Shown in pieces: positions 7,793-64,000 of a DNA stretch of 64,000 nt. Source of the stretch: Cycas panzhihuaensis (lineage: Eukaryota > Plantae > Cycadophyta). Location of the stretch: contig CM041465.1 of NCBI GenBank assembly GCA_023213395.1, positions 173,855,741-173,919,740 of the forward strand, read 5' to 3'. Position numbers and translations under genes: made by a program. Every line of letters starts with the position of its first letter. Within the stretch, counting starts at the first letter, position 1. The notes beneath the pieces were generated by a model. That model saw nothing but the letters and a program-made list of their open reading frames with translations. It had not been told where the DNA came from and ran no database searches.

Positions 7793-8425
7793 ATGGCTAG
7801 TGGAAGAGGTATAATGGGATTAGTGTCTAAAAATTTGCTTGGTCCTGATAACTATACTAGTTGGAAACATCACATGTTAAGTTTTTTCCATTTGAATGAT
7901 CTTTGGAAGTATGTGGATAATTCTGTAATGGGAAAAGATGCAACCAAAATCACTACTTTCCAAGCTAAACCAAACTCGAATGAAGACTTTAATACTAAAT
8001 GTCAATCTAAAATGCGAATAACAATTGGATTTCTCAACATGTCTCTCAATGGCAACATCATATTAAACATCAAGAGTGCTGCTACACCAAAGCAGATGTA
8101 ACACATAGTCATGAACCAATATGAACGCAAGGATGATGTAAGATCCCTGAACCTACGAAGTCAACTGTATAGTTTGAAGATGACAAGCAATATGATGGAA
8201 CACATGTGAAATGTGAGATCTATAGAGCATCAACTGATGGCAATAAGCAAGATCATACCTAATTCAGAGATCATAGCCTACATTCTAAGGAGTCTACCAC
8301 TCTAGTACAAGCACTTCTTGACCACATTGACATTGTTTGATAAATTGTCTACACTGGATATTGGTTCTTTGGAATCCTTGCTTATGAAACAAGAGCAAAA
8401 ACTAAAGTAGATGCACGACGAATCA
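7793..8425 (+). pseudogene. gag: Copia-1 gag, N-terminal part
   Basis: UBN2-type gag motifs; frame continues at 26923 after removing element A. Confidence 0.85.
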
Positions 8426-9144
8426 TGTTGCGGTTATATTTGACACGTGCGTCCGTTAGAGGGAATGTATGACAAAAACCAGACAAAACGGTGGATATTT
8501 TGCAAGGCAACCATTCGGAATGGATTCGGGACAGAGAACGAATGCAAAACACAGTCCATACTACCGCAAGAACGGATGTTGAACGCAGGAACGAATGATG
8601 AACACAGGGACGCACTGAGCAGAAAAATGAACGGTTGTGGCACAACAGAGGAATGAAAGATGGAACGTACGTAACACGTGGGCAGTCGTACATGTTAAGG
8701 AACGAATTAGAAGTTAACAGAGTATGGTTAAGGACTGAAGAGGCATCCATTCGAGAAAATAGATGGTTGCGACCGTTAATCGTAATTGTTCTGTAACAGC
8801 GATGCACCGTGTATTTAAATACATCTGCTTGTTGGAATGGATGTGAGAGCCGAGTGAGTGATTTCATTAGTACATGATCTGGTACAGTTGACTAGTTAGA
8901 CCTGTACGGATTATATGTGATGTAATAATTGACTATTGGCTAATGGAATAATAGAGTTATGTGGAAAAACATGTGTACTCACTAAGGAATGCATGGTGAA
9001 TGTATGCGTATAAGCTTATCTGTGGACTTATGTGGCCTAATAAATGAAGATTATGTATGTTGACCACGTGCACACACCCTAGACTACAATGGAAAACCTT
9101 GACAGGTGAAGATCTTGCAATAGAGAGCAGATCTTAAGTTAACA
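8426..9144 (+). repeat. Element A 5' LTR
   Basis: Colinear with 26213-26917. Confidence 0.95.
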
Positions 9145-12762: not shown

Positions 12763-13313
12763 TGTGTGCGGCCAAAATACTTACTTGTTTTGAGTAGATG
12801 AAGTGCAACAAGACCTTGGTATAAGTGCAATTGGGCTGATATGAGTGCAATCGGGACTGAGGATAAGTGCAACCAGACCTGGACAGGTGCGGTTAAGTGC
12901 AATCAGCACTAACAGCAAGTGCAACCAGGACTGACGGCAAAGCAGTCAAGTGCAACACGGACCGATGTGAGTGCAACTCAGTAGGATAATGCAACCAGGC
13001 GTGATCAGTAATCTTGGCAGCATTAGTTAGAATTTGTAATTAAAAGTTAACAAAGTAGTTATGTAACTGTGTAACTGTAGGACAAATGTATAAAAGAAGA
13101 AGTAAAGACGGAATACGTATGAATCATTGTAAATCCCTCTAGGCTATCTAGTCTGTGGCTGCAATTGTCCAGGCCTGCGTCTGGTTGTGAGAGGAACAGA
13201 CGCAGCGCCCTTCTTATAATGAAGTTGGTTGTTTGTACTCCAAACTGTGCCTTTTTCTCTGGATTATGGTTCTTTGAATGTATGTGATTCAACCTAAGAG
13301 AAAGGCGCACACA
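12763..13313 (+). repeat. Element B 5' LTR
   Basis: Colinear with 21675-22200. Confidence 0.96.
12801..12996 (+). repeat. Array of ~9 AAGTGCAAC-like motifs with variable spacers in B U3
   Basis: Counted by eye; ~8 copies in the 3' LTR (21713-21885). Confidence 0.85.
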
Positions 13314-13315
13314 TT

Positions 13316-13330
13316 TGGTTCCATTGTCAG
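13316..13330 (+). other. Element B PBS, tRNA-Glu type (TGGTTCCATTGTCAG)
   Basis: Differs from TGGTTCCGTTGCCGG only by transitions at CG/CHG sites. Confidence 0.75.
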
Positions 13331-13388
13331 TTATCTTAAATGTGAGAAGATGATTCTCTTCTGAAGAATGAGCAAGGGAGGGCTGTCC

Positions 13389-15510
13389 ATGACACCTAGG
13401 GCCAATTCGGTAAGGAAGGTTGAGACCAGACAAGAGAGAAGCCAGTGTTGGGAGGCGGAGAAAAGCCAGGAAGGCACCTGCAAACCCAAGGAACCGGTTG
13501 AAAAGAAGTCGGTTAAGAGAAAAGTCTTGAAGGGCCGACGGGAGCAAAGTCAGACCCCAAACGTGCGAGGGAGAGATAATCAAGAAAAAGAAAGCGTAAC
13601 AGAGGCCCAAGAGGAAAAGCAGGACTCACAAGTAGAAGATTCAAAGCAGACAAAAGATAAGGACTTGTAGATTTTTGAAGAGGAACACATTGCCCTAGAG
13701 GACGGAAAATCAATTAGTTTAGAGGTGTATAGCACCACCAAAGTAGGGAGGGATTGCTATATTGTGGAGGTCAAAGATTCCCATTCCCATGTATTAAACC
13801 CTTTGTTCAGTAGAATGACTGAAATATTTTCAGGGTCAACATTCTTGGGAGGAAGCCCAGAAAGTGCAAATCAGACAACCCCAAATCAAGGAGGAAGTGA
13901 AGAGGGAGGAGCAAGCACAGCAAGGAATATAAACAGAACTGGGCAGGGTGAACCAATTTCTTCAGGACCAATAAATATGATGCAAGGAAATGCAACAGGA
14001 GGAGGAAATCAGGCAAATTCTCAATATGTAATAGTTCAAAATGATGCAATGTTTGGGCATCTACAGTTTGATGGCTGAGGAAATCTTGGAGATCACTTGG
14101 CTTTATTTTCTAATATGCTGAAGATCAAGAAAATTAAGGATCCAGAGGAGATCAAGGCAAGATTTTTCTCCACATTGCGAGGAGCAGCAATAGCCTAGTA
14201 TCAATATGTGGCAAAGACAAATCCCACATGGGAAGTGGTGCAGACACAGTTTTTGGACAAATTCCAGAGACTAAGGGATCCAATGTCCATCTTTCAAGCC
14301 TTGGAGGAAATCTGGCAAGTACCAGGTGAGTCAGTGAATGATTTTGATGGTAGACTCTAGATTATTATGAACAAAATGGATCCTGCCATACCCCTGAATC
14401 CAATGTTGTCTTTGAAATATTTTGTCCAAGGACTGTTGCCCCATTTAAAGGAAAAAATTACATTTCATCCATTAAATAGCTATGAGCAAGTGAAAGAACT
14501 GGCTTTGCGGTTTGAAAATCAAATGAGGACAGGATATTTACAAACTGGAGTTCAGAACGTTGGGCAGATAGGCATGTCTCAATGGACAATACATCCAGAA
14601 GTTAAGGTCTTGAGAAAAGAAGTAGAATCACTGAAACAGCAATCCCTGATGGTGCCTTCTGGAGCAAGTTAGCAAAATGAGGAAATTGAAAATTTGAGGG
14701 CAAAAATAGCCAAAGTAAAAGTGGGAAAATCCCAAGAAAAATATCTGGTGTCCTCCCCCCTATGGACAGCTAGGACATTTTAGAAATGAACATTAGCAGA
14801 TAGAAAGACATTGGTGTGATATCTGCAAAAGGGGAAATCATTCTACATGGGAATGTTATTATAAGGCACCAGTAAGAGAATCATTCTATCAAAGGAAAGA
14901 GAATACTTCCTTTAAACAATATAAGGGAAAAACAAAACCGGTTCGTTGCCATCTATGTTCAACATGGGGACATTTTTGAACAGACTATCCATTGCAAAAA
15001 CAAGAAGGAGATTACATTTCTGAAGAATGTGTTCCGGCAGAACACGAATGGGCAAACTGCCCAAAGAATCCTAGCCTGAAAATACAAACCTCTAACTTGG
15101 TGACAAAAGTTCCAGATAAAGAATAGCCAGTTATATTCAGACAAGAAGTGGGAAGGTTACTGTTGCACCAGTTGTGGAAAATTTTCCCGATCCAGCAGTA
15201 AAAAGAAAAAGATTACAAGAAGTTGTCCAAGCCTTACAAGAGGCAACAAAAATAGTGCAGCAAGATGAAATGGGGCAAGACAATAGATTTAAAAGCCAAG
15301 TTTATCAGAGGCGACCAGTGATGCATGAAGAACAACTTGGGGAAAATCCTTGGCAAAAATTGCAAGAAAGGAAGGAGCTGTGGACTGAAGCAGGGATTTC
15401 TATTCCTGTTACTACAATTTTCAGGTGGTTGGAAGCTGGCTATTTTCAGCAAGTAATTCTAGACCAGATTGAAAAGCCTGTATTGCGAGCTTTTGAAAAC
15501 AGATTCAACT
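13389..15510 (+). pseudogene. gag: Element B gag
   Basis: QFDG..DHL..FFSTLRGAAIA, PGESVNDF, YFVQGLLPHLK, zinc knuckles at 14745-15060. Confidence 0.88.
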
Positions 15511-15548
15511 GATCCAAGAGGCCCCATGACTCTTTTTATTACAATGAT

Positions 15549-18500
15549 TTGCAAAACTATTGTAGATGGCGGGTCGGGAGTGAATGTATTGCCAGAAACC
15601 ACATGGATTTCATTGGGACGCCGAAAATGGTTTCCCCAGATTATGCGATTAGACTGGCCAATCAATTACAAGCTCGATCGATGGGATCCTTGCTGAATAT
15701 TCCAGTCATGGTGGCAGGAATTACAATGTGTTTAGATTTTGCAGTTGTGAGGATGCAAAATCATAATAAAACGTATCCTACACTCTTGGGAAGACCATGG
15801 TTACTTGCAACAAAAGCATTGCAAGATTGGAGAAGATTGACCTTTACCCTGCATCCTACAGGAAAGAAAGTAGTGTTACCTCTTTGCTCGGATGGACCCC
15901 ATGTAGAAAAGGTGGAAGATCTAGATACAGCGTCCACAACCACTGCCTCATCAGCCACTATAGTTAGTCCTTGTTCTGAAATGGCATTCCAAGTCTTAAA
16001 GACTGCTCCTCAGCTTCCAAGTGAAGCTTCATCAACCTATCTGTTGGACTGGTTGCAATCAGCATGGGAAGAAGTAGGAGATAGATCCTTAAATTGCTAC
16101 CTAATGGAGTTGTGCCCAAACAAACAACAGCAAGAACAGAATACAGAAGGTAATCTTGTAACTCAGGAGAAAAAAGAAAGCTATATAAAAAATCCTTCTT
16201 TCAATAAAATCCAAATTGATTGCTTGTACTTCTTGTCTAAAAGTTTGCCAGTAGAAAATTGTTTGGCTGAAATTTCTAAGTAGAGGAAGGTTCCTTCCTC
16301 TCCCGGGAATTGTTATCAAATAAATCAAGATGAAGTAAGGAATTTTCCAAAAACATATTCTGTTACAAAATATGGACAAAAAGAAATTTGTCAAGTTCTA
16401 GCCTATGGGTTTAATCCAGATAGGGAAACTATTCAAAAAAGAGAACTTCAATTAAAATCAATCAATGTTGGAACAGAAAAAGATCCTAAATGGATAAAAG
16501 TAGGGGACTATTGGGAGCCTGAAATGATGTAGAAGGCAATATCACTTTTTTGTGAATACAAGGATGTGTTCGCATGGTCCTATAAGGACCTATAGGGAAT
16601 CCCTCCAGAAGTCGGTGAGCATAAGATTGAATTGATAGAAAATGTGAAACCAGTAAGGCAGAGGCCTTACAGGATGAACCTGCGATACAAAGAACAAGTA
16701 AAAGCTAAGCTGAATAAATTGCTAGAAGTCGGATACATTTTTGAAGCAAAAAATAGTGAATGGGTAAGCCCAGTTGTGGTAGTACCCAAAAAGAATGGAA
16801 AACTTCGTGTATGTGTTGATTATAGGGCTTTAAATAAATCCACGAAGAAGGATCCATTTCCAATTCCCTTCACCGAAAACATACTGGAAAAAGTTTCAGG
16901 GCATGAGATATTCTCATTCACATATGTGTTCAGCAGGTACAATCAGGTTCGGATAGCACCTGAAGATCAATTGAAGACGACATTTGTCATTAAATGGGGC
17001 ACTTATGCCTATAAGGTTATGTCGTTTGGGCTAACAAATGCCCCAGTAACCTTTCAAAGAATCATTTTGAATATCTTTTGGAAGTTGATAGGAAAGGCAA
17101 TCGAAGTATTTTTGGATGATTGGACTTTGTATAGTCTTTTACAAGACCAATTGCTCCAATTGAGGCTAATGTTAGAATTGTGCAGGAAAAACAAATTATG
17201 CCTGAATCTTGACAAATGTACCTTTATGGTACCATTTGGATCCTTACTGGGACACATTGTCTCAAAAGAAGGATTAATGACTGATCCGACGAAGGTTGAA
17301 GTGATTTTGAAATTTCCTGTTCCCAAAAATCCAAAAAATCAGAAGGGATTCTTAGGAATGACTGAATATTATCAGAAATTTATAAGAGGATATGCCCAAA
17401 TTGCCTATCCTTTGGAATCATTATTGAAGAAGGCAAACAAATGGGAGTGGACAATGCAGCAACAATTGTCCTTTGATGCTTTGAAGAAAAAACATAGTGG
17501 AAGGCCCTATGCTTAAATTCCCAGATTGGAACAAACCGTTCCATGTGCATGTGGATGCCTCATTGTACGCCATTGGATGTGTATTAGCCCAACCAGCTGA
17601 TGAAAAAATAAATCTTCCCATTGCCTTTGCAAGTCGGAAATTAACTCCTGCTGAATGTAACTATACAGTTACGGAGCGAGAAGGGTTAGGCATGGTGTAT
17701 GCCTTACAAAAGTTCTGACATTATCTGCTAGCTAATCCGTTTGTATTTTTTGTTGATCATCAGGCTTTGCAGTATTTAATTAGTAAACCAATCCTGCAAG
17801 GCAGGATTAGTCGTTGGCTAATGTTTTTCCAGGAGTTCATGTTTAAAATTGTAGTGAAAAAAGGTGATAAGCACGTGATACCAAACCAATTATCTAGAAT
17901 AAAAGAAGGAGAATCAAGTATTGGAATATTTGATGATTTTCCGGACCACAAGTTGTTTTCCATTGAAGTTGTTCCATCCTCGTATGAAAGAATTGCAAAA
18001 TACTTATCCACAGGGCAAACACCTAGGGGACTGGAAAAGGCAGAAAGAAGGAGTTCCATCAAGAAAGTCTTTCCTTTCCAATTAATAGGCGGTATGTTAT
18101 GTAAGCTAGGGCCAGATGAAGTTCGGCAAAGATGCATATTGCAACATGAAGTACCATCAATATTAAGGGAAGCACATGAAGGGATAGCTTCAACCCATCA
18201 TGGAGGAGAGGCCACGGCCCGGAAGATATTGGAAGTAGGATTATGGTGGCTGACATTGTTTGAAGATGCTGAGAAATGGGTGAAATCTTTCGATATCTAT
18301 CAGCGAACTGGTAAACCTTCTAAACAAAATTATCTGCCCCTACATCCTTTTTTGGCCCAAGCTCCATTTGAAAAGTGGGGGCTAGATTTTGTGGGACCAA
18401 TTAGCCCCCGGCAGCAAGGACTAATGCCCGATATATATTAGTAGCCACTGATTTCCTAACTAAATAAGCAGAAGTCAAACCTATGAAGAATTGTGATGCA

Positions 18501-19230
18501 AGAAGCACAGCTCGTTTCTTGTATGAAGTCATTATAGTAAGGTTTGGTTGTCCCTCGGAAATTATATCGAATCAAGGAGGAAGCTTTTTAAATCAGACAA
18601 TAAAATATTTGACATCAGAATTTCTGATACAGCATGGCAAATCATCGCCATATTATCCTAGAGCAAATGGCCAAGTAGCAAGTACAAATAAAATTTTGAA
18701 AATAGCTCTAATGAAGATCTGTAATGCACAACGAACAGATTGGGCGAAAATGTTGCATTCGGTTCTATGGGCAGACAGAACAATGAGAAAAAGATCGCAT
18801 AAGCATACCCCATTTCAACTTGCTTATGGACTGGAAGATGTGGTTCCCCTAGAATTTCAAGCAGAAAGTCTGAGGGTGGCTCAACACTTAAGATTGGAAC
18901 CTGAAATTTCTTATGACCAGAGGCTAATACAATTAATGAGATTGGACAAAACTCGAGCTCAAGCCTTTTGGGAGTTGTAGGTAGAGAAGAAAAGGCGCAA
19001 AGCTTGGCATGATTGTCATCTCAAAAAACCTGAGTATAAGGTAAATGATTTGGTCTTATTATATGATAGCAAGTTTAAAATTAAACCAAGTAAAACGAAA
19101 ATAAGGTGGTTGGGACCTTATCGAGTTAATCATATTTATGAGAATGGAGCTGTTAGGTTGCAGCAATTAGATGGTCAGCCATTGACCAGATTGATCAATG
19201 GCAGCAAAATAAAATTATACAAAATATTAA
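15549..19230 (+). pseudogene. pol: Element B pol (PR, RT, RNase H, integrase) with stops and frameshifts
   Basis: VDGGSGVN, YPTLLGRPWL, KKNGKLRVCVDYR, FLDDW, VDAS..IG.VL, EREGL, WGLDFVGPI, PYYPRANGQ, WLGPY. Confidence 0.96.
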
Positions 19231-19858
19231 AAAAAAAAAAAAAAAAAGAGCACCAACAACCAAGGGACAAGATCTCTTCAAGAAATGATCGGAATGTGTA
19301 AGGTAATCATAACAGTAATCAATGATAACCATCACTGATTGGTACGACTATGCACAACATGGACATAACAAATGAACGTGGTGAGGAAGGACGGGATGTG
19401 ACAATGCAGACATGATGATTGGATGCCACAATAAAGACAGCACAACGTGGATGTGGCAACGTGGACATCATAATGAGGACGGAGAAACGTGGATGTGACA
19501 GTTATCGGAGCGCTTCAATAATTGAAGCAACACCCATCGCTGCAAGGTATGGTACCACCAAATGAAATGATGGAACAGTCACATTAAGATTGCTTTTCTG
19601 GAAGGAGATACGACAATAGGCAATTGCAGCGCAGAATTAAAAGATGTGAGCAGACATTTCGGCTACGAGATACAGCATTTCAATGGTAAAGATATCCGCA
19701 GCGCAGGATTTGAGCAAGTGTGGTAATGAATCACAGTAGCAAGGAAGTAAGTAGAGTAAACAAGTGCGACAAGGAACAAAGCACCAACAGAGATACGACT
19801 GCAGGCAATTCCAGTACGGGAGTAAGAAACAAGTAAGCGCGGTAGAAGACAGACGATA

Positions 19859-21598
19859 ATGGCAAAGACAATATTGTTTAAAGAAAATGATGACCTGCAT
19901 ATTAGGACTGAATCGCAAGTTATGAGCGAAGTGGACATGAGGAAAAAACTATTAACAAAAGCCACGTTGCACAGATATATAATGGTAGGCACCTTCCTTG
20001 GTTTAGTTAAATTTTTGAATAATGTAATTCCATTGTTGGCTGAACATCCAAAAATTTTACAAGTTTCTAAGGAATCCATAGCAGCATTAACGGGACTCCC
20101 TAAGGAAGGTAAAATGGTGAGGCGGGATACCCAAATATCCCGAGAAGAAGCTGCTAAATTGATTGGAGCAAGTACTAAAGACACTTCAACCTCAGGTATT
20201 CGAATTGCAGGAATCCAATCTCCCGAAAAGAGATTTTTGGCTCATTTTATATTTACTAGGATAATATTGAATCAAAAGAATCTATTTGTGCCAACAAATT
20301 TAAGAATAATGATCAACAAGGTGGCTCAAGGTATGCGCTTCAATAGGGCAAATCTTGTAGCAGGGAGGTTCATACAAAATCTACAAACAATACAAGAAAC
20401 GGCCAAAACTGTCACTTTTTATCATGTGACACTTTTACAGGGATTACTTATCTCGCAGATTCTAGAAATAATAATGCCTTCACCAAAGGAGGAGCAAGCC
20501 CCCTTAGCCTGTTGGACCAATAGTGGTATCAACTGTGAGAAATGGGGAGAAATACAAAATAAAATTCAAGATTGGGTGCAAAGACAATATACATTGAGAA
20601 CAGTGGTGGTTGAGATCAAAGAGCATGTAGAAGAAGTCAACATTCAGGGAGAGGAAGGAAATGGAGTTCCACACGAAAACAGGGAAACAGAAGAAGAAGA
20701 GAAGATAGGAATAAAACTGCCAGAATGATAGGCAGAAGGAGGAAAAGATAAGGGAAAGAAGGAGCTACCAAAGGAAGAGGCAGCAGAAGAGAAAAAAGAT
20801 GAGAGGGAAAAAAATAGAGGCAGAAGCAGAAAAGGGAAAAAGGAAGCAAGACATTCAGGAAGAAAAAGAAACAGAAAGTGAATTCCAAAGACAAAAGCGA
20901 GTAAGATTGGCCCGGGAGAAAAAGAAAAAGGAAATTATAGAGCAAATAGAAAAATAGCCACCAGAAGTTGAGTATAATGTGGACAAAGAGATACTGGAGA
21001 AGGGATTAGATCCCATGAAATGTGATCCTCAAGACGTATCCAATTGGAGAACCTCTTTTTTGGCCAAGCTAACTAGACAACTAGTTACAGAGTTAGAAAA
21101 CAGAACCAAACCACTGGAAGAGTCATTAAAACTAGCTCACCAAGTGACTGAGAAAAAATTAGAATCTTTTAAAAAGTTTATAATGGAACGGGTTGATGAT
21201 GTAGATAAAGTAGGTCCTCAATTATAGCAATTTAAAGAGAGATTTAACCAATACATTCCAGGAGATATGCAGCCAGTATATCGCAGGTTGAGAGCATGGA
21301 TTCTGAAATCATATGAGCAATCGGAGCACTATAGAACACTGTGGAAAGAACGGTATGCATATCGACAAGAATTGGAACTCGTGCAGAGGGTTAACACTGA
21401 ATTGAATTAAGAAATTGAGCAATTACATTCAGGAGAAATGCCTACACTTTCATTGTTGGATACAATGCGAGACATAGTTCTATTGTGTGAATATTTGAAA
21501 CAAAATGGGTTAAGACTACCCCCTCAAATTGTAAGGCCAGACATGGAGTATATTCGAAGAGAAAAAGCAAAAATTATAGAAAATTAGATGAGGAAATG
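19859..21598 (+). pseudogene. Element B ORF3 accessory protein (TGLP-motif domain, E/K-rich linker, coiled-coil C-terminus)
   Basis: 289-aa open frame containing IAALTGLPKEG..TSGIRIA..FNRANLVA, followed by disrupted continuation up to the 3' UTR. Confidence 0.75.
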
Positions 21599-21674
21599 AA
21601 AGTAGAAAGTTTTGTTCTTTTTTTTGAAATTTTGGAATGAGTATGCTACTCGTTCAAACTAGCTGCAGGGGAGA

Positions 21675-22200
21675 TGTGTGCAGCTAAAATACTTACTTGT
21701 TTTGAGTAGATGAAGTGCAACCAGACCTTGGTATAAGTGCAATTGGGCTGATACGAGTGCAACTAGGACTGAGGATAAGTGCAACCAGACCTGGACAGAT
21801 GCGGTTAAGTGCAACCAGCGCTAACAGCAAGTGCAACCAGGACTAACGACAAAGCAGTGCAACCCGGGCAGGGGATAATGCAACCAGGGCAGCAATCAGT
21901 AATTCGGGCAGCATTAGTTAGAATTTGTAATTAAAAGTTAACAAAGTAGTTATGTAAGCGTAATCAGAGATGATGTATAAAAGAAGAAGTAAAGACAGAA
22001 TACATATGAATCATTGTAAATCCTTGTAGGTTGTCTAGTCTGTGGATGTAATTGTCCAGGCCTGCATCTGGTTGTGAGAGGACCAGATTCAGCGCCCTTC
22101 TTATAATGAAGTTGGTTGTTTGGGCTCCAAACTGTGTCTTTTTCTTTGGATTATGGTTCTTTGAATGCATGTAATTCAACCTAAGAGAAAGACACACACA
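21675..22200 (+). repeat. Element B 3' LTR (PPT AGGGGAGA at 21667-21674)
   Basis: Colinear with the 5' LTR. Confidence 0.96.
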
Positions 22201-22790
22201 GTTTGCAATCAACTTTCAGACTTAGGTTCGACCCACCCCAAAACTTATTAATTGCAGGATTTTTGGTAGGAGAATGCCCTAGCAAGCATCTCCCCAGGTG
22301 CAGACGGGTGTGAAAGCATTGGAACATTCCTAAGCTACATTGAAGCCACATTTTTATCCATACATTGGGAACTTTAGCGAAAACACGGTTCTTAAAGCAA
22401 GAACAAGTCCAACTAGTAGCATGGGAAGAGATAGAGCATTTGTTCACCAAAGCCTTTTCATACTCTTCCAATAACCAAGTAATCCACAAAGTAGCAAAAA
22501 ATATAAAGAATATAAGTAGGGGAGTAGAAAAAAATTTAATGTCAATTGAAAGCATTAAAGATACGGAATACAACGACAATGAAGAGAAGGGGGAGAGAGA
22601 GAAGAGGCGCAAAACCTACCTCCGAAATACACAAAATTAAAATATGGGCAACGAGATATAGAGGACACACCTGCCCACCAAATGGGAAAAAGAAATACAA
22701 CGCGGGGAACCCAAAACAACCCAAATAAACCTTGGGACAGAGACAGACCCCAAAAACATTACTATCAGTAACTACTAGGACGAGAAAACA

Positions 22791-24438
22791 ATGACAGAAG
22801 CTCAAGCACTATTCGAAAAGTATCGAGATGTTTTCGCCTCATCTTACAAGGACCTCAAGGGAATCCCACTTGAAATTGGGATGCACCATATCGATCTAAT
22901 TGAGGGGGCAAAACTAGTGAAACAAAGGCCTTACAGAATGAATCCACGATACAAGGGGAAAGTGAAAGCAAAGATAGACAAGATGTTAGAAGCAGGATAT
23001 ATATACGAGATTGAATATAGTGGTCAGGTAAGTCATGTCGTGGTCATACCCAAGAAAAATGGAAAAATCCGAGCGTGCATAGATTACCAACATCTCAACA
23101 AAGTCACCAAGAAGGACCCCTTCCTGATTCCTTTCACAAAAGATATTCTAAAGACTGTAGGGGGGAAGGAAGTTTATTCCTTCATAGGCAGATTCAGTGG
23201 GTATAATCAGATGAGCATTGCACCTAAGGACCAACACAAGACTACCTTCATAACTGAATGGGGGACCTATGCATATCGAGTTATGTCATCTGGACTTATG
23301 AACGCCCCAACGACTTTCCAAAGGATCGTACTCAATATATTCAGGAAACTAATTTGGGAAACAATTATCGTATTTCTGGACGATTGGACTCTATACAATA
23401 TAATGAAGAACCACATAGAAAACACGCAAAGGAAAATCTTAACAACCGGATTATGGTGGCCGACCTTGTTCGAAGATGTAAAGAATTGGGTCAAAAAATG
23501 CGACCATTACCAAAGGGTAGGGAAACCTAATCGATGAGATTTCAATCCCTTAACCCCAACCCTTCCCTTGGCACCCATTGAGAAATGGGGTTCAGATTTT
23601 ATTGGGCCTATCAAACCGGCAGTGAGAAGAACGCAAGCCCACTATATTTTGGTAGCCACAGATTATGCCACAAAATGGGTGGAAGCCATGCCATTACGAA
23701 AGGCAGATGCAACCAGTACGGCCAAAATTCTCTACGAGGTCATCATCACCATATTTGAATGTCCTATCGAGTTGATCATTGATCAAGGAGCCCACTTTAT
23801 CAACGAGGTGATCAAAGAATTAACAGAAACATTCCTAATCACTCATCATAAATCCACACCGTACTACCCTCGTGCGAATGGGCAAGCAGAAAGCTCTAGT
23901 AAGATCCTGGAGAATTGTTTACAAAAGGTGTGCGATATTAGTAGATCCGATTGGGCAGAGAAACTACCTTCTGTCCTAAGGGCATTCCGCACCACATGCA
24001 AACAAGCCATGGGACACACTCCATTTAAGTTAGTGTATGGGATGGAAACCATACTCCCCATCGAGTTCCAGATACCCAGTTTGAGGATTGCCTTAGCTTG
24101 TCGATTGGACAACACTGAATCTTTACGAGAACACCTATGGCAATTGATTCAACTTGACGAGGATAGACAAAAGTCATAATGGCTACAGGAGATCGAGAAA
24201 ACAAGATAGAAGGCGTGGCACGATTGCCACCTCAAATGCCCTCAGTTCGAAAAAGGAGAACAAGTCCTACTATATGATAGCAAATTCCACACCAATCCCG
24301 AAAAACTAAAACCACGATGGTTGGGACCCTACCAAGTGGAAAAGATTTATCCTAACAGATCAGTTCAACTACAAGAAGTGAACGGTTATAAACTGCCTAC
24401 CCTACTCAATGGCAGTTAGTTGAAAAAATATCACCATT
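22791..24438 (+). pseudogene. pol: Element A RT N-terminal half fused by deletion to integrase
   Basis: RT up to FLDDW then directly TQRKIL..GLWWPTLF (integrase zinc domain); INT core WGSDFIGPI, PYYPRANGQ, WLGPY. Confidence 0.92.
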
Positions 24439-25026
24439 AAAGCATACCCCTCCAATACGAGTCAACTGGATGTATAATACATATTGCATGAAGTTGCAAA
24501 CAACTATAGTTGTCATAGTACTGGTACAAAGACTCGACACCAATGCATAAACATAAAAAATCCTTACAAAAAAACTAAAAAACGGAAAAAAACTAACCGT
24601 AACTCGCAAAAATTATACACCTAGACAAAAGTCAAAGAGAATTATACCTTGCATCCCAAATTCAGAATGTAAACAAGCAAAGAAATCCAGTACAATATGA
24701 TACGTTCCTCACAGGGGACGGAAGAGACAGAAACTGGCCAAAAATTGGAACCGTTCCAAAAATGGAACGGATTGAACTGCATGTGTTCCCAGACAGGAAT
24801 GCAACCCAAACGAATGAAAAAAAAAAAAGTGTATTATAAGTAGCAGAACCCTAGAATCATTCCGACATTCGAACGCATGAAGGAAATGAGAGCAATATCT
24901 GACCCTAAAGAGGCAGCCACTTCAATCGTCTGAACCGAGGCATACGTCCGACAAAAAGGTGTAACTCCGTCGAAAGGATCCATTGTTGAATCTTGTTTTT
25001 TTCATACATTCCCCTTCGGCCACAGG

Positions 25027-26101
25027 ATGAAAATTGCAAGTATCTAGGAGACCTATTTGCCAAAACTCCAGGGAGAATTCAAGGAGTTACGGATAATTTC
25101 AGGGCAAGAATTAAACAAGCTGGATGGGAGGATTTTGTTATAATGCCTCCTCTGTATTGGGACCCAGAAATCATGGAGGAAATCATCATAGTCGTAAAAT
25201 GGAACAGGGAAAAGGTTAAGATAGATGTGGCAGCCATTCATGAGATTACAGGGTTATCCAAGGAAGGAGAAACCCCCACGGTTACAAAGAAATCAAAGGT
25301 AGACTGAGAGACATGCAAAAGGGAGCTATGTGCCTTACATACTCAGGTTTACTCCGGGGGCATAAGAATTGTGGATATCTTAGATAGGAAATTATAGTGG
25401 GCTGCTAAAGTTCTGGTATCCAAATTTTCATTAAAGCAGAAGCATACATATATTCTTGGAGGATTAGTACCCCTACTTTCAGCATTACGAGATGGGATAA
25501 AAATGAACTGATGTGAGTTCTTGGCCAACAGCATAGAGCTACTGTTTCCGGAACTTCAAACCCACCTCTTTAGACAACCATCATTATTATTGGCTTTATT
25601 ATTCCAGCAGTGCCCAGATATTAATCTCCCTTCCTTACCTATCCAACCTGGGCAACCTATGATAAAGAAATAGATTAATATTATGCCAAGCAGTACCCAA
25701 GATCCAGGAGTGAAGCGATAGGTCAAAGCGGAGATGGCCAAAGTATTGAAATGGCTACAGTATAAACCAAGGACCTCCTTTCCACTTCGCCAAAAGCAGG
25801 CAACCAAAAGAGGTACCAAAAGGAGTAGAGGACAACAAGAAGTTGAGAAGCTACCAAAGGAACGGGAAACGGAGCTCCCACCCATAGTTACAAAACCAGG
25901 GGAAGGTTCCTCACAGACGTCCTTAAGTGAAAAGGGTACGCAAATCATCCAGTTATTACAGGAATTAGAACAAGGGTACAAGGCACACATATTGCAGTTG
26001 CAGAAGAAGATTAAGGAGAAAGATGTGATAATAGCCACCCTGATATAGATAAACGAAGTCATGTTGAGAAACATTGAACCATCAAAAGAACCAGGACTGT
26101 A
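25027..26101 (+). pseudogene. Element A ORF3 (disrupted), homologue of the element C ORF
   Basis: IKQAGW, PLYWDPEIME, EITGL, KVLKWLQ, EGYKA..LQ.KIKEKD.IIATL align with 44281-45351. Confidence 0.88.
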
Positions 26102-26212
26102 GGAGCAGCCCTAATTACAAAAAGCGGGCAGGGGGAAGCCAAGAAGAACAATATTTTAAAAATTTTTGAATTGAGCACGGATGCTCAACCATTTTTGTTG
26201 ACCCTGCATAGA

Positions 26213-26917
26213 TGTTGCAATTATATTTGACACATGTGCGTCCATTAGAGGGAATGTACGACGAAAACCAAATAAAACAGTGGATATTTTACAGGGCAAC
26301 CATTCAACATGTATTCGGAACAAAGAACGGATGAAACAAAGTGTAGAAAACAGTTCATCCTGCCGCAGGAATGGATGATGAACACAGGGACGCACCAAGC
26401 AGAAAAAGGAACGATTGCAGCATAGTAGAGGAACAAAGGATGAAACGTGTGTAACACGTGGACAATCGTACGTGTTAAGGAACGAATTAGAGGTTAACAA
26501 AGTATAGTTAAGGACTGAAGAGGCGTCCATTCGGAACAGTTGTGATTGTTAGTCGCAATCGTTCCGTAACAAGGACGCACCATGTATTTAAACACATCCA
26601 ATTGTTGGAATGGATGTGAGAGCTGAGTGAGTGATTTCATTGGTACCCGATCTGGTACGATTGACCAATCAGACCTGTACGGATTATATGTGATGTACTA
26701 ATTGACTATTGCCTAATGGAATAATAGAGTTACGTGGAAAAGCATGTGTACTCACTAAGAAATGCATGGCGATTGTATGTGTATAAGCTTATCTGTGGAC
26801 TTATGTGGCCTAATAAATGAAGATTATGTATGTTGACCACGTGCACACACCCTAGACTACAATGGAAACCCTTGACAAGTGAAGATCTTGCAGTAGAGAG
26901 CAGATTTGAAGTCAACA
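26213..26917 (+). repeat. Element A 3' LTR
   Basis: Colinear with the 5' LTR; followed by the TSD. Confidence 0.95.
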
Positions 26918-42441: not shown

Positions 42442-42582
42442 CTCCATTCAATGAGATGATACTAGCTATGAAAGAGGTGTGGGTGAGGCTTGTAGTTTGT
42501 ATTCATGCACCTTCTAAAAGAAACCTGTGAATCATATTCTATGATTGAGATTATGTTTCCTAAGTTTTAAAGTTGCAGTATA

Positions 42583-43417
42583 TGTTGGAGCATAATGTGA
42601 CACGCTAGGCTATAGGCAGACTAGAGAGAAGCCGAATATCCTTGGGTATGCAGTAGTGCGGACCGTGCGGAGGTACGTATCACGGTGAAAAGTGAAGAAT
42701 CCAACATTGCATGCGTATGACGGTGCGTACCTAGTAAAGGTATGCAACAGAATCGTACCTCTGGCGGAACACAAGCAAGCGAGGCAGTGCGCATGAGAAG
42801 GCGGATGAAGGGAGCACAGGGTGACGTCGGGGCGTGCGTCACGGATGTACGGATGAGTTAAGATAGTCAATTAAGGAAACTAACCAATGGTTAGGAAGAG
42901 GTACGCTTGATCGAAGGTACGGTTATGACAGACAGTCATAACCCTTCAGCGAAAAGACACCAAGGAGCGTATTTATGAGGCTTCCCAAGGACCATTCGGT
43001 TGGGGTGAGAGCCAAGTATACCAGTACACATTGGCAGGGAGACCAGTACGCATGGAAGCAGCCTGAAGCCATGTATTTTGATGGGTACCTCCTGGGTATG
43101 CATGTGACAGAATTAGTGTATAACGCTGGAATGCACAGGGAATGCATTCCAGCACCTTGTGTAAAAGAACTATTGCTTAATGAAATAAGAAGTTACGTGG
43201 AAATTGTGTATTCTCTGTGTTGTAAGGATTGAATGTGGAATATGTGCTGATTTCTGTACTGCTATGTGCCATTGTGATATAATCATGTGGAAACATTAAT
43301 AAATCTGTGGAATATATGTGGATGACGATGTTGATTGTGTCCTAAACTAGACTATAACCCGTGTAACCTTGACAAGTGTACCCTTCCCACAAGTGCAGTG
43401 GGAAACCTAAGTCAACA
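42583..43417 (+). repeat. Element C 5' LTR
   Basis: TG..CA termini; colinear with the 3' LTR. Confidence 0.93.
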
Positions 43418-43418
43418 C

Positions 43419-43429
43419 TGGTTCCGTTG
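43419..43429 (+). other. Element C PBS, tRNA-Glu (TGGTTCCGTTG)
   Basis: 1 nt after the LTR; complement of ..CAACGGAACCA. Confidence 0.88.
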
Positions 43430-43452
43430 TAGTCTAGTTGGTTAGGATACTC
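43423..43452 (+). tRNA. Sense-strand 5' fragment (nt 1-30) of plant cytosolic tRNA-Glu; not a complete gene
   Basis: TCCGTTGTAGTCTAGTTGGTTAGGATACTC matches the recalled tRNA-Glu 5' end TCCGTTGTAGTCTAGCTGGTTAGGATACTC at 29/30; includes the D-arm/A-box; anticodon loop and T arm absent. Confidence 0.85.
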
Positions 43453-43714
43453 TTATAGGTTAGCTTACCAGCCGGATCAGCTAGTTGTACTATAACGCGT
43501 TGCATGAAGTTGAGGCAAATCAAATTGCCTTGATACCGGAAGGTTATCCACTTCGGTATGGAAACAAAAATACAAAAAAATGAAAAAACAAGAAAAAACA
43601 ACCGTAACCCATATCATATACATAAGCAATATGAAGACAAGAATATTATGACTAAAAGAATCAAGGATAAGAAAGAATTCTGTCAAAAAATCTGAATTTT
43701 TACATACATACCGA

Positions 43715-43985
43715 CAAAATACACTATACGTACCAGGAAAAGTATGTTACCAGTGCACGACTGTAAAATACATTATACATACCAGCAAAGAACGTTATCT
43801 GGTATGCACTATGTAAAATAAGACAAAATACACTCTGCGTACCGGAAAAAAGTACGCTATCTGGTACGCACTATGTAAAACAGGCTAAAATACATTATGT
43901 ATACGGAAAAGTGCGCTACGAGTGCGCATAGTGGAAAATGGATAAATTAAACAGTTTATACTATGCGTGCACGAAAAGTATCTTG
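43715..43985 (+). repeat. Degenerate ~50-60-bp tandem repeat (AAAATACAC/TT..GTACC.GAAAAGTA..TATCTGGT..GCACTATGTAAAA), ~5 units
   Basis: Repeated units visible by eye. Confidence 0.75.
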
Positions 43986-44280
43986 GTCGAAGTACGCATA
44001 GAACAAAGACGGGAATAAGACAAAAGTATATATTACATATCTGCAAGCATTCCCGTGCAGTACGCAACAGGAAATCGAGCATAATTCTGTCCGGATTCTC
44101 AACAACAAGCAACCGAGCACAGCCCTTGCAATCCAGGGAGACAAAAGGACGAAATTCGGCCTCAAATCAGCAAGTATAAAGTCCAATAAACAACAACCAT
44201 ACCAGCAAAGGTACGCACATAGGGTTCGTACCCATAATCTAGGATTATTTCAGTTTTCTCTCTGGAATCCCATAGCCAGC

Positions 44281-45351
44281 ATGAAGACAGCAGGTTGTCA
44301 GGAGACTTTCATACCCAGATTAAAGAAGGACCTCGAAGCATTACCCTCTCAATTTCAAGCAAAAATTAAGCAAGCTGCTTGGGGAGAGTACATATACTGT
44401 AACCCTATGTACTATGACCCAGAAATTATGGAAAATATTTTAGCAGAATTAAAAAAGGACATGAGCAAGATTAAGCTAGATGCAGAGACAGTACATTTGA
44501 TAACAGGACTTCCCAACGAAGGGGAAGTACCCGCAGCAACCAAACGCTCGGAAGTGGACTGTGAGTTATGGCTAAAAGAGTTCTGCCAAGAACACACACA
44601 ACTAACTTCAGGCGGAATCCGTGTGGCAAATATAAAAGACATCCGATTACAATGGATAGCAAAAGTTATTAATTTTAGGTTTTTGTCAAAAAGAAAATAC
44701 ACATACATTCCAAGGGGAATGATGCCAATATTATTGAAGATTCGTGATGGAGAGAAAATGGATTGGTCAGAATTCCTGGCAGAAGACATGCGGCAGCAAA
44801 TTCAGGAAATAATGACTCATCCTCTTCGCCACCCTTCATTGTTGCTAGCTATCCTATTTTATCAGTGTCCAAATGTACAACTGGTGAAAACAACCACTTC
44901 TCCAAAGGAACCCCTAATTAAAAAGTGGGTAACTGAGTTTCCAGATACAACACAAAATCCAGAAGTTAAAAGGAGAGTACAAAAACAGATGAGTAAAGTG
45001 CTTAAATGGTTGCAACAAACCCGTGGGACACCCATTCCTCATCGGGTTAAGCAAACTATAAGGAAAAATAGCAAAAGAAAGAAGGATGAGGAAGAACCAG
45101 CAGAGGCCGAAGAAGTAGAACCTTTGCTAGAAGAATGGGAAGATTTTCCACCCGTAATGGAAACAGGAGAGACATCAGTACCACCCCCGACAGATAATAA
45201 ATCCAGCCAGATCATACAGCTAGTTATGGACATGGAAGAAGGGTATAAGGCAGAAATAACAGCGCTTCAGGAGAAAATTAAAGAAAAGGATGCAATAATT
45301 GCCACACTGACCCAAATCAATGAAGAAATTCTGGCTACAAGACAGCGGTAG
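44281..45351 (+). CDS. Intact 356-aa ORF3 accessory protein of element C
   Basis: Uninterrupted ATG-to-stop frame, the longest in the ORF track; homologous to the disrupted A ORF3; LITGLPNEG motif, basic/acidic linker, coiled-coil C-terminus. Confidence 0.85.
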   Translation: MKTAGCQETFIPRLKKDLEALPSQFQAKIKQAAWGEYIYCNPMYYDPEIMENILAELKKDMSKIKLDAETVHLITGLPNEGEVPAATKRSEVDCELWLKEFCQEHTQLTSGGIRVANIKDIRLQWIAKVINFRFLSKRKYTYIPRGMMPILLKIRDGEKMDWSEFLAEDMRQQIQEIMTHPLRHPSLLLAILFYQCPNVQLVKTTTSPKEPLIKKWVTEFPDTTQNPEVKRRVQKQMSKVLKWLQQTRGTPIPHRVKQTIRKNSKRKKDEEEPAEAEEVEPLLEEWEDFPPVMETGETSVPPPTDNKSSQIIQLVMDMEEGYKAEITALQEKIKEKDAIIATLTQINEEILATRQR

Positions 45352-45450
45352 CATGAGCAGCCTTGAAAAGGGGAGGGGGAGGAATACCCCAAATTTTGAA
45401 AATTTTGTTGAGCAAGGATGCTCAAACCCTTCATGTTGACCGGGGATAGA

Positions 45451-46247
45451 TGTTGGCCAAGTATCCTTGGACTATGCAAGTACGAACCATACGGAGGTAC
45501 GTATGCAATGAAAAGTGAAGAATCCAACGTTAAGGAGTATGATGACAAAAGTACCTAGTAAGGGTACGCAACACAGATACGTACCTCCTGGCAGAACGCA
45601 AGCAAATAGGAATGATACGCATGAGAAGACTGGACAGAATGGAGCCTGGGGTGACGTCAGACGTACATACGGACGTACGGATGAGTTAAGACAGTCAATT
45701 AAGGAAACTAACCAATGGTTAGGAAGAGGTACGCTTGACTGAAAAGGTACGGTTATGACAGATAGTCATAACCCTTCAACGAAAAGACACCAAGGAGCAT
45801 ATTTATGAGGCTTCCCAAGGACCATTCGGTTGGGGTGAGAGCCAAGTATACCAGTACACATTGGCACGGAGACCAGTACGCATGGAAGCAGCCTGAAGCC
45901 GTGTATTTTGATGGGTACCTCCTGGGTACGCATGTGACAGAGTTAGTGTATAAGGCTGGAATGCACAGGGAATGCATTCCAGCACCTTGTGTAAAGGAAC
46001 TATTGCTTAATGAAATAAAAAGTTACGTGGAAATTGTGTATTCTTTGTGTTGCAAGGATTGGATGTGGAATATGTGCTAATTTCTGTACTGTTGTGTGCC
46101 GTTGTGATATAATCATGTGGAAACATTAATAAATCTGTGGAATATATGTGGATGATGATGTTGACTGTGTCCTAAACTAGACTATAACCCGTGTAACCTT
46201 GACAAGTGTACCCTTCCCATAAGTGCAATGGAAAACCTAAGTCAGCA
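45451..46247 (+). repeat. Element C 3' LTR
   Basis: Preceded by GGGGATAGA; followed by the TSD. Confidence 0.93.
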
Positions 46248-46252
46248 GTATA

Positions 46253-55399: not shown

Positions 55400-58170
55400 G
55401 CATGCAAAGGATTTGTTTGATTTCTCTATGATTATATTATTACATTCATCCTACACCCCAAGTAACCCAAAATTTCGCTTAATACCATACATGTTGCACA
55501 CCAATGTTACAAAGTAAAACTGTAGCACAAACTCTATTATCAAATGTATATCAACCAAAACTATCCTACCAAACTACTTACAACAATCTCTAACCTTTAA
55601 ATACCATATCCATGCGATTACAACAAATGAATATCACTAGTTGATGGAAACTTGTCATTCAATGCATTCCTACACAATACACCTAAACAACATATTATAT
55701 AGCCTAGTAATAAGTATTACACGATTGGATAATAAGATACCATACAATCAGATCACCTCACTCCCACTATGCAGTGTTACATACAAACCTAATGCAACTC
55801 ATCTACACAAAAGCAACTAAGCCCAATTCTACATTTAGTGTGCTATTGACAAATTCTTCAAGGTTTGTAGGCTCAAACCCAAACTTTGAATAAGTTCCTA
55901 TAAAGTAGCATTCAATTATACAAGAAAAGAACAAGTGTTGAAAGATGCTTTCATAAGACATCATCTAGCCAAAGCTACTTTATTTCAAGAATCATTGCCC
56001 CCTAGGGGGAAGGATCGCCTCAACTCATATGGTATGTGGGCGAATCCATCAAATAGAAGGGTTAGTTCAATTCATGAAGCAAGTTGCAAATCCTTTCAGT
56101 ACTTCAAAACATATCTCTATAAGGGGTAAATATTCAAGTGAAGCCACTATCTCACCATTGATTTATAGAGTATTTAGTAAAAATAATAAGATACTGAAAA
56201 AAATATTGATAACTAGAACAAATATTCTAGAGGAATTTTGCTTCTTGACGAACTAGTGTGTCATTTCAAATGGTATTCTCTGAGTTCCTATAATCGTAAC
56301 ATGCATGTAAGATTGCAACCCCCATATGAGTGGCCATTTACTCCATCCTTTAGAACAAGAAGGCCAATATTGCATATGATCAATTAATCAACTATTATTA
56401 AAAATGAGTCCATTTTAATTTTTTCTATCTCAAAGAAAAAATCTATGCTCAAAACATCACCTAAAAACAAAAAATGGCTTCCGATCTACCAAAGACATCA
56501 ATCTCCAAGTTCTATCACAAGATGAATGAACCAAACGTAAATGGGTTTTGCTATATAAACTTGCAATTTGGCCAAAGAGACTACCATCCACAACTTCCAA
56601 ATATAGAAGAAATAATCCCATTCGTAGAAGATGCTTCCATAGTATTATTCAAGTATGAAAGATAAAAGATATCCATGTATGCATTCCAAAACAATGCCAT
56701 GGAAATGAAAATGCTAAATACTGAATATCTCAATAACAACATAAAGCCCAACGCAAGATCCAAGATTTGTCTTGTAAATAAGAGGGACCCCAAAAGATCT
56801 AAGCCTAACAAATGATCCAATGTGTTAAAACAAAAACTAGGGAATATCAATATACCAAGCCTCTCATCATGCCTCCAATCCAAAATGTTGCACACCTTTT
56901 CATTAATCAAAAATAAACCATCATTAGCTTATTAATACCAACTAACCTTATATGACCAAACCCTAACTTGATGAATTCCATGTGCCAAAAGGCAAAAGAT
57001 CACCCGCCCACACAATGAACAACAAATGCCCTTTAGTTATAACACATCCTAATAAACCTTCCTAAATAATCCCAATCGATCTCCATGATTAGGTATATAG
57101 CAATGATAAGCTACTCACATGTACAGTAGCATCCAAAGGCCATACAATGGATTAGAACTAACTATCAAAATGAGGCCACAAAAAGGTAAAAGGATAAGTC
57201 CACTACTAATAGGGAATCAATGTGGTATGACATCAAAGAATAGAATATGTGCCCAAAGAAAGGACAAATCCTATAAGGGGATGGCATTTCATTAGTTGTA
57301 ACAACCTTGCCTTAGAAAGGCTTAATGCCAACTTCATACTCTCATCTATTAGTATTATAAAGTGCTACCCCTTGTTAAAGCATTGACATGATCTTGATCG
57401 TCCTTACTAAAGCTCTACTCTAAGAATCCTATTACAATAAATGCACCTATGAGTTCGTGCTTAGGTGCCCAAAAGGATGATGTTAATAATCTGCCTCAAA
57501 CTCTCCTATGATGGGCACTAGTTGAATACATGGCTACTAACCCATACTAATGAAAGATATTTGTGTCTGATACAAGTTATAAGTGGAATAAGAAGGCAAG
57601 CCATCATAACATAGTAGAAGGTGCAAGTTTGAACCAAATATGTTAAAACTTGTTATAATGATATCAAAAGGGAGAGAAATCATTTTCGCTTCGCAAAGAT
57701 AAGACCCATAGAAGAACATCAAACCCAAAACAAGAGATCTTTCTAGCTACATTGGAAAAGGAATTGATGAAAATACATACGAGTAAATCTCCAAGACAAA
57801 GAAAAGGTGTTCTGCAACAAATTTTGAAAAGGAACCCTTCCTATGATACTTACGCTAACTCTAGCCAAACTCAAAAATCTTATAGAGAAGGTCTATGTAA
57901 AAATCCCAAGATGCAAGAAAGGAAAAAATTGATCTTTATTGCTTGATGATACAAGAAGGAATAGTACAAGTATTTAAAGCGAAATGCATGAGTGACACAT
58001 GTCAAACATGCTAGACAGGTATAACAACTTTCAAAATACAAAGATTCTAAAGTTACAAAAGAGTAAAACATTATTTCTAACACCCCCCCAAAATGTTTAC
58101 TCTTTGTCCCTTAACCTAATTTTCCTTTTGAAGTACAAGAATTTGTCCTTCCACAGTAGTTTGGTGAAGA
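55400..58170 (-). mobile_element. Possible highly decayed LINE (RT and C-terminal region)
   Basis: Only faint minus-strand RT-like residues near 57600-57900; A-rich plus strand as in the other LINEs here. Confidence 0.3.
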
Positions 58171-63550: not shown

Positions 63551-64000
63551 TTATGGTTGTCCTTGTCGTCTTTTATCAGCCTGGTCTTTAATTTTATACA
63601 ATTTGAGTTTCAATCCATTGACCACAATCATTTGCCCGTCCTCATTGATATGTGTTATTTCCACCGAACCATTTTCATAGATTTTTCTGACTATAAACGG
63701 ACCGAGCCAACGAACCTTTAGCTTGCATGGTTTTATGAAGTGTTTGCCATCGTATTTAAGAACCAAATCTCCTTCTTTAAATGTTTTTGGATGTAATTTC
63801 TTGTCATGCCATTCTTTCCTCCGTTGTTGTACTATGTTCATCACCCACTGCACATGTTGTTGTTTTTCATCAAGGACAAGAATGGCTTTCAATCGATTCT
63901 AGGGGCTAGTTGCATCTGGCCATCTTTGTTGAATCGCGATTCTTAGACTTGCCACTATATATTCTATAAGAAGAACTACTTTTGCCCCATAAACTAACTG
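63551..64000 (-). pseudogene. pol: Element H integrase C-terminus
   Basis: RKEWHD..FKEGDLVLKYD..KLKVRWLGPF..VNG.KLKLY. Confidence 0.92.

Follow-up and report, generated by a model that had tools for sequence, protein, structure and literature searches.

How does an LTR retrotransposon come to carry the 5' end of a tRNA, in sense and directly in register with its primer-binding site (PBS), when the tRNA species is the one whose 3' end that PBS is complementary to? This question is raised by a retrotransposon of Cycas panzhihuaensis, here called element C, which lies in a 64-kb stretch of DNA that was analysed as a whole (the window). Its features are as follows, with positions counted from the first letter of the window.

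42583-46247, plus strand: element C, an LTR retrotransposon of Cycas panzhihuaensis that lacks gag-pol
42578-42582, plus strand: target-site duplication (TSD) GTATA, 5' copy; the identical 5-mer directly adjoins both LTR ends
42583-43417, plus strand: 5' LTR of C, TGTTGG...AAGTCAACA
43418: 1-nt spacer, a C, separating the 5' LTR from the PBS
43419-43429, plus strand: PBS TGGTTCCGTTG, 11 nt, complementary to the tRNA-Glu 3' end CAACGGAACCA
43423-43452, plus strand: exact sense copy of tRNA-Glu nt 1-30, TCCGTTGTAGTCTAGTTGGTTAGGATACTC, whose first 7 nt are common to the PBS
43453-43468, plus strand: junction stretch, with arguable homology to element A from about 43459 and about 6 nt (TTATAG) without assigned origin
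43469-45450, plus strand: interior, homologous to what follows integrase in element A, including a pairing block (43471-43498), ORF3 and the polypurine tract
45442-45450, plus strand: polypurine tract GGGGATAGA, directly before the 3' LTR
45451-46247, plus strand: 3' LTR of C, TGTTGG...AAGTCAGCA
46248-46252, plus strand: target-site duplication GTATA, 3' copy

Element C has every structural mark of a non-autonomous LTR retrotransposon, namely two LTRs, a TSD, a PBS and a polypurine tract in combination with the lack of gag-pol. The LTRs are roughly 800 nt long with TG..CA termini, and they are 89.6% identical between 42631-43414 and 45456-46244 (blastn), with a K2P divergence of 0.123 and 11 indel events in a MAFFT alignment. 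About 43 nt following the initial TGTTG of the 5' LTR (42588-42630) are absent from the 3' LTR; this is a post-insertion indel, and because of it automatic repeat finding placed the start of C at 42631. That start is wrong, the true one being 42583, with which the GTATA flanks agree. No empty-site paralogue of the flanks of C was found within the 64-kb window.

Beyond the PBS TGGTTCCGTTG, C reads on as TAGTCTAGTTGGTTAGGATACTC, and 43423-43452 is a 30-mer starting with TCCGTTG. The initial annotation had taken this 30-mer for nt 1-30 of tRNA-Glu in sense orientation, and a check against published plant tRNA-Glu sequences bears it out, the match reaching far past the 7-nt stem. Abundant small RNAs known from poplar and olive (PMC4189724, PMC3564680) have the same sequence as nt 1-21 of the tRNA (the first 20-21 nt of the 30-mer), and a strawberry small RNA is a one-base variant of the start of the 30-mer. 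A sequenced fragment of Arabidopsis tRNA-Glu(CTC) reads AGGAUACUC and then GGCUCUCACCCGAG, with the 3' end CAACGGAACCA; nt 22-30 of the 30-mer (AGGATACTC) match this fragment, whose 3' end in turn has the 11-nt PBS as its exact complement (PMC3221849). Barley tRNA-Glu RE6781 agrees with the 30-mer at 28 of 30 positions (PMC1904245). The accompanying claim that the PBS does not run on as anti-tRNA also holds, in that an 18-nt antisense PBS has no match at the site even at 3 mismatches and the sequence turns to sense after 11 nt. The PBS and the sense piece are kept in register by the 7-nt acceptor-stem identity, as had likewise been proposed, and an 11-nt PBS is retained.

Coincidental similarity, a tRNA pseudogene lying at this site and an error of assembly are all highly improbable explanations, and no point in favour of any of the three was found. 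The match is 30 of 30, the 30-mer is unique in the window even when up to 3 mismatches are allowed, and shuffled sequences give an expectation of 0. The whole arrangement lies within an element that has a TSD on its flanks and coherent LTRs. The 30-mer is considered a tRNA fragment because no whole tRNA was found at the site: ARAGORN reported 0 genes and Rfam gave no tRNA match, returning for 43000-44000 only sub-threshold miRNA and snoRNA noise. A tRNA gene or pseudogene was rejected, as there is no cloverleaf and no 3' half (T arm and 3' strand of the acceptor stem), and unrelated sequence follows nt 30. Of the internal promoter boxes, only box A lies in the captured piece, and the box B region is absent. 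The sense tRNA-Glu arrangement in C is real and not a product of chance.

Two autonomous relatives in the window allow the interior of C to be compared.

about 8425-9144 and 26212-26917: outer LTRs of element A, autonomous
9146: PBS of A, TGGTTATGTTGCC, for tRNA-Glu
24418-24420: TAG, end of the A integrase
12763-22205: element B, autonomous, nested in A
13316-13326: PBS of B, TGGTTCCATTG, 11 nt, for tRNA-Glu, CpG decayed

All of gag-pol had been stated to be missing from C, and this proved correct: the interior of C is collinear with the post-integrase region of A, and the tRNA piece sits at the deletion point. C 43571-43608 matches A 24565-24603, ORF3 of C (44281-45351) matches A 25077-26066 with 46% amino-acid identity (ORF3 of A being degenerate), and C 45393-45455 matches A 26153-26217. 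Within 43418-45450 the single long ORF is an intact ORF3 of 356 aa, in which no gag or pol domain, and indeed no Pfam match of any kind, was found. A comparison of the gag and pol ORFs of A, B and the rest of the window with the interior of C also gave no match. Relatives of ORF3 in a representative HMMER search were limited to Ginkgo and Cryptomeria proteins and short Logan fragments, and a separate homologous-protein search with ORF3 returned no relatives. A distant similarity of ORF3 to a B ORF at 19859-20728 was also seen. Homology to A is convincing from about 43469 and arguable from about 43459, leaving at most 6-16 nt between the tRNA piece and the homologous region, and no other match to the junction stretch 43453-43468 was found in the window. 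In A coordinates the junction falls about 10-16 nt past the position of the pol stop; the post-integrase region of B is uninformative. A further related element is indicated at 63614-64000 (minus strand), where a C-terminal integrase fragment, 41% identical to that of A, runs off the end of the window. C derives from a Ty3/gypsy-type family that is primed by tRNA-Glu and related to A, and is itself non-autonomous.

The best explanation for this structure, although our confidence in it falls somewhat short of even, is that C is a gag-pol-less derivative made when reverse transcriptase copied tRNA-Glu, with deletion of gag-pol. As to its parts, capture of the tRNA by way of reverse transcription is likely, and the bridging of the deletion in one step is plausible, being one of two live readings and tentatively held. 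Because the tRNA stands in sense on the plus strand, the minus-strand DNA would have been templated by the tRNA; primer read-through during plus-strand strong-stop synthesis was rejected, since it would leave antisense sequence, which is not seen. The template for the 30 nt would have been a real cytosolic tRNA-Glu, or a 5' fragment of one, copied by the reverse transcriptase of the element. In the proposed course of events, minus-strand synthesis would arrive just 3' of pol on the genomic RNA and carry on with tRNA-Glu as template, copying it from around nt 30 down to nt 1. The new DNA would have CAACGGA at its 3' end, which would pair with TCCGTTG where plus-strand strong-stop DNA holds its copy of the PBS, and completion of the provirus would follow. 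Such an event would delete gag-pol and leave the 11-nt PBS followed by tRNA nt 8-30. That a template switch took place, on which strand and when, and that the 7-nt identity was used, is our inference. The switch could equally have been an end-to-end jump off a subgenomic RNA at its 5' terminus, or the template could have been a pre-ligated chimeric RNA; in a further variant, a tRNA 5' fragment would have acted as an aberrant plus-strand primer and then been copied. The last step, pairing of CAACGGA with TCCGTTG, would be common to all variants.

Several points count against the one-step model. A mismatched 7-nt flap on plus-strand strong-stop DNA must be resolved, tRNA nt 29-30 is not a usual site of cleavage into tRNA halves, and the arrangement is seen in a single copy, produced by an undated event that could have been separate from the deletion. 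Microhomology involving TACTC at the pol end of A was considered and discarded, as this 5-mer is not significant and lies within background; no clear microhomology was found at the tRNA nt 30 junction.

The position of the junction brings in the leading alternative. A random jump has a chance of only about 0.3% of reaching a 20-nt target in about 6 kb, and the observed precision is unexpected. An origin from spliced or subgenomic ORF3 RNA fits this precision at least as well as a random template jump does, since the junction lies directly 3' of the pol-stop position, the place at which one would look for an acceptor, or for the 5' end of a subgenomic RNA, serving a downstream ORF. According to this alternative, which we consider rather unlikely, the piece is an established leader feature of the C family, acquired beforehand by an autonomous ancestor, and had no bridging role in the deletion, and C is a reverse-transcribed spliced or subgenomic ORF3 mRNA or a later deletion derivative. 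The junction sequence ...TTATAG/GTTAGC (the slash marking the join) is compatible with an exon-exon AG/G join, and ORF3 has remained intact despite the LTR divergence of K2P 0.123. However, ORF3 does not begin until about 830 nt past the junction, a distance that would give a spliced mRNA a long leader, and neither A nor B, the autonomous relatives present in the window, has the piece. Similarity to sense tRNA (nt 8-30) in the 45 nt after the PBS is at chance level in A and in B (P = 0.43 and 0.83, respectively), a degenerate sense half in either leader being rejected as not significant. The sense piece is therefore not a general feature of the lineage. A likeness of the tRNA D arm to the pol-stop region of A and to the post-pol block was within window background and was also set aside. 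As for the long leader of C itself, it contains degenerate repeats of about 62 nt (43787-43849 versus 43849-43910, 81% identity, in the region 43700-43950) and A-rich repeats of 8-10 nt at 43561-43601.

Other parts of these elements are complementary to the same tRNA. To assess them, duplex energies were computed for the 30-mer against every 40-nt window on both strands (12,792 windows). The candidate boxes are listed below.

43336-43360, plus strand, with a 3' LTR copy at 46166-46190: U5 box of C, complementary to tRNA-Glu nt about 4-28 (5' acceptor strand and D arm)
within 9054-9094 and 26826-26866: homologous U5 box of A
43000-43020, plus strand, with a 3' LTR copy at 45830-45850: C LTR box TTGGGGTGAGAGCCAAG/TTGGGGTGAGAGCCAAGTAT, complementary to the anticodon arm of tRNA-Glu(CUC)

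Leaving aside the antisense strand of the site itself, no sequence in the window is computed to pair with the 30-mer as stably as the U5 boxes of C and A, which also give its best antisense alignments there. The duplex energy is -29.8 kcal/mol for the C box; for A it is -28.3 kcal/mol in the 40-nt scan and -33.9 kcal/mol with the full A U5 region. Alignment of the two U5 regions places the boxes at homologous positions, 53-61 nt upstream of the PBS. The C box is the complement of tRNA nt about 4-28 with a 3-nt gap and two transitions, and the core of the A box, CTAGACTACAATGGA, is the complement of nt 1-15 with CpG decayed. The third box differs from the complement of the anticodon arm by 3 mismatches, all C-to-T changes that give G-U pairs, and a pattern search of the window found 2 matches to it compared with 0.01 expected. 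It lies just downstream of a TATA-like TATTTAT and may mark the 5' end of R. No complement of the T arm was found, and no U5 anti-tRNA box of B was present among the top matches; other antisense matches, at 55561, 4481 and 50161, were dismissed as they have no PBS context. The conserved U5 boxes suggest, on the basis of sequence complementarity, a bipartite primer-binding system in the lineage of A and C. If the boxes bind tRNA-Glu, then the tRNA would be held through far more than the PBS, with its 5' half unfolded and near the template. Boxes of this kind would keep an unfolded tRNA on the RNA in the particle, making it a plausible template. In the post-pol region of C, a block at 43471-43498, about 20 nt past the piece, can pair with tRNA nt 2-25 (21 bp, -24.3 kcal/mol). 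This pairing falls in the top 0.18% of windows and might mean that a tRNA was tethered at this block, but the A equivalent is unremarkable (-16.8 kcal/mol, top 6%).

The U5 box also bears on where the captured piece came from. The piece matches the tRNA exactly and not the complement of the imperfect U5 box of C, and it was therefore copied from a real tRNA and did not co-evolve with the box. In the RNA of C the piece is computed to pair in cis with the U5 box over 28 bp (-31.6 kcal/mol), and the predicted folds of 43300-43470 and 43300-43530 contain this long stem (z = -3.07 and -2.85, respectively), with nothing comparable in the equivalent A region (z = -0.46). Under capture by reverse transcription, this cis pairing would be a by-product. 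Were the piece instead an established leader feature, the predicted stem could have favoured its retention as a cis element; however, the piece, being exact tRNA, does not co-vary with the imperfect box. A stronger form of this idea, to which we give only a small chance, is that the sense 5' half is a propagated functional cis-element. It might lock the PBS and the U5 box in the 28-bp stem, which would be opened by strand exchange with tRNA-Glu, the tRNA 3' end going to the PBS and the 5' half to the U5 box. It might otherwise supply a built-in 5' half with which a tRNA-Glu 3' half or 3' tRF, once docked, would form part of a chimeric tRNA-like fold and act as primer. Both versions would have the cis-element renewed in each cycle by copying of a real tRNA, in the way that the PBS is renewed.

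Plants are known to carry filler or templated insertions where the ends of a deletion have been joined. It can accordingly be asked whether gag-pol was lost at the DNA level after insertion, by microhomology-mediated end joining with filler copied from a tRNA-Glu gene and seeded by the 7-nt TCCGTTG. The PBS and tRNA stretch, including its CpG, is unmutated, as compared with an 11% difference between the LTRs, which would fit a younger event of this type. However, the probability of no change in 34 nt is about 0.12-0.15 under neutrality, which is not significant, and that of CpG retention is about 0.58 per lineage. Furthermore, end joining would have to choose a tRNA-Glu gene among all genomic occurrences of a 7-mer, whereas primer tRNA species are known to be enriched in virus-like particles. 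The copy begins exactly with nt 1 of the mature tRNA and keeps register with the PBS for the very tRNA species that primes C; this would be a coincidence under DNA repair but is natural under reverse transcription. We regard this DNA-repair origin as improbable, and return to capture by reverse transcription in comparing C with known systems.

C resembles elements of the LARD and TRIM type in having two LTRs, a TSD, a PBS and a polypurine tract without gag-pol, and in an interior homologous to part of an autonomous relative; template switching has been reported as a source of non-autonomous plant LTR elements (PMC13570524). Unlike these, C holds its own primer tRNA at the deletion joint, in sense and in register with the PBS, and has retained ORF3. 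Helenus/TRIMp3 is likewise a non-autonomous LTR element with a tRNA-derived sense sequence, but there the LTR itself houses a nearly complete tRNA-like unit with a Pol III promoter and with no link to the PBS (Kojima 2024, PMC10886601). The piece of C, by contrast, is internal, consists of nt 1-30 only, overlaps the PBS and comes from the primer tRNA species. C was not assigned to the Helenus/TRIMp3 type, its LTRs holding antisense boxes only, with the sense piece internal and box B lacking. Half-tRNA priming, used by copia, Ty5 and the plant Osser and Bianca lineages, also involves the 5' portion of a tRNA in LTR-retrotransposon replication, although in these systems an internal stretch of the tRNA is what the PBS can pair with, the 5' half serving as primer (PMC6317226). 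A copia-type half-tRNA PBS was rejected for C, whose PBS pairs with the terminal ACCA and the 3' strand of the acceptor stem and which contains the 5' half in the form of sense DNA.

Extended or bipartite primer binding is known from boxes 0, 1 and 2.1 of Ty1, the bipartite PBS of Ty3 and the PAS of HIV-1. Like these, the U5 boxes (in C and in A) and C's anti-anticodon-arm box lie outside the PBS and are complementary to the primer tRNA, and the U5 boxes appear, as far as their sequences indicate, to be what defines an extended PBS, namely extra tRNA-complementary boxes conserved among relatives. Whereas the Ty1, Ty3 and HIV-1 boxes are antisense to the tRNA, the captured piece of C is sense and would compete with the tRNA for the U5 box.

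Capture of small RNAs by reverse transcriptases, with microhomology at the joints, has other examples in LINE-mediated U6 and tRNA chimeras and in retroviral recombinants containing 7SL. In HIV-infected cells in culture, reverse-transcribed tRNA-Gly cDNA has been found beside deleted proviruses (PMC12220202). These cases share with C a cellular small RNA that is reverse-transcribed and joined to retroelement DNA, with an associated deletion; in contrast, the HIV tRNA cDNA is nearly full length and lies outside the 3' LTR (PMC12220202), and C carries a 30-nt 5' piece inside the element, abutting the PBS.

The junction was also searched for beyond the window. The junction pattern had 0 matches in a viral contig collection and 6 in metagenome contigs, all of the latter being chance 19-mers that do not continue as tRNA, and a 24-nt version had 0 matches in prokaryote genome contigs. 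In the literature searched, a limited library, no description was found of a PBS followed by the in-register sense 5' end of the same tRNA. The arrangement is an unusual one, known here from a single copy and without a description found in that literature.

As a single copy, element C is a curiosity and not a mechanism. If the piece proves to be family-wide, it would represent a new kind of leader element, a primer mimic. If the one-step reading is true, C would be a sequence fossil of the reverse transcriptase of a plant LTR retrotransposon using its own primer tRNA species as a template, and the self-complementary acceptor stem would be able to rescue strand transfer, giving rise to a mobilisable non-autonomous element in a single cycle. 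Taken together with the conserved anti-tRNA boxes of the LTRs, the one-step reading suggests that tRNA-Glu may be held unfolded on the genomic RNA in this lineage.
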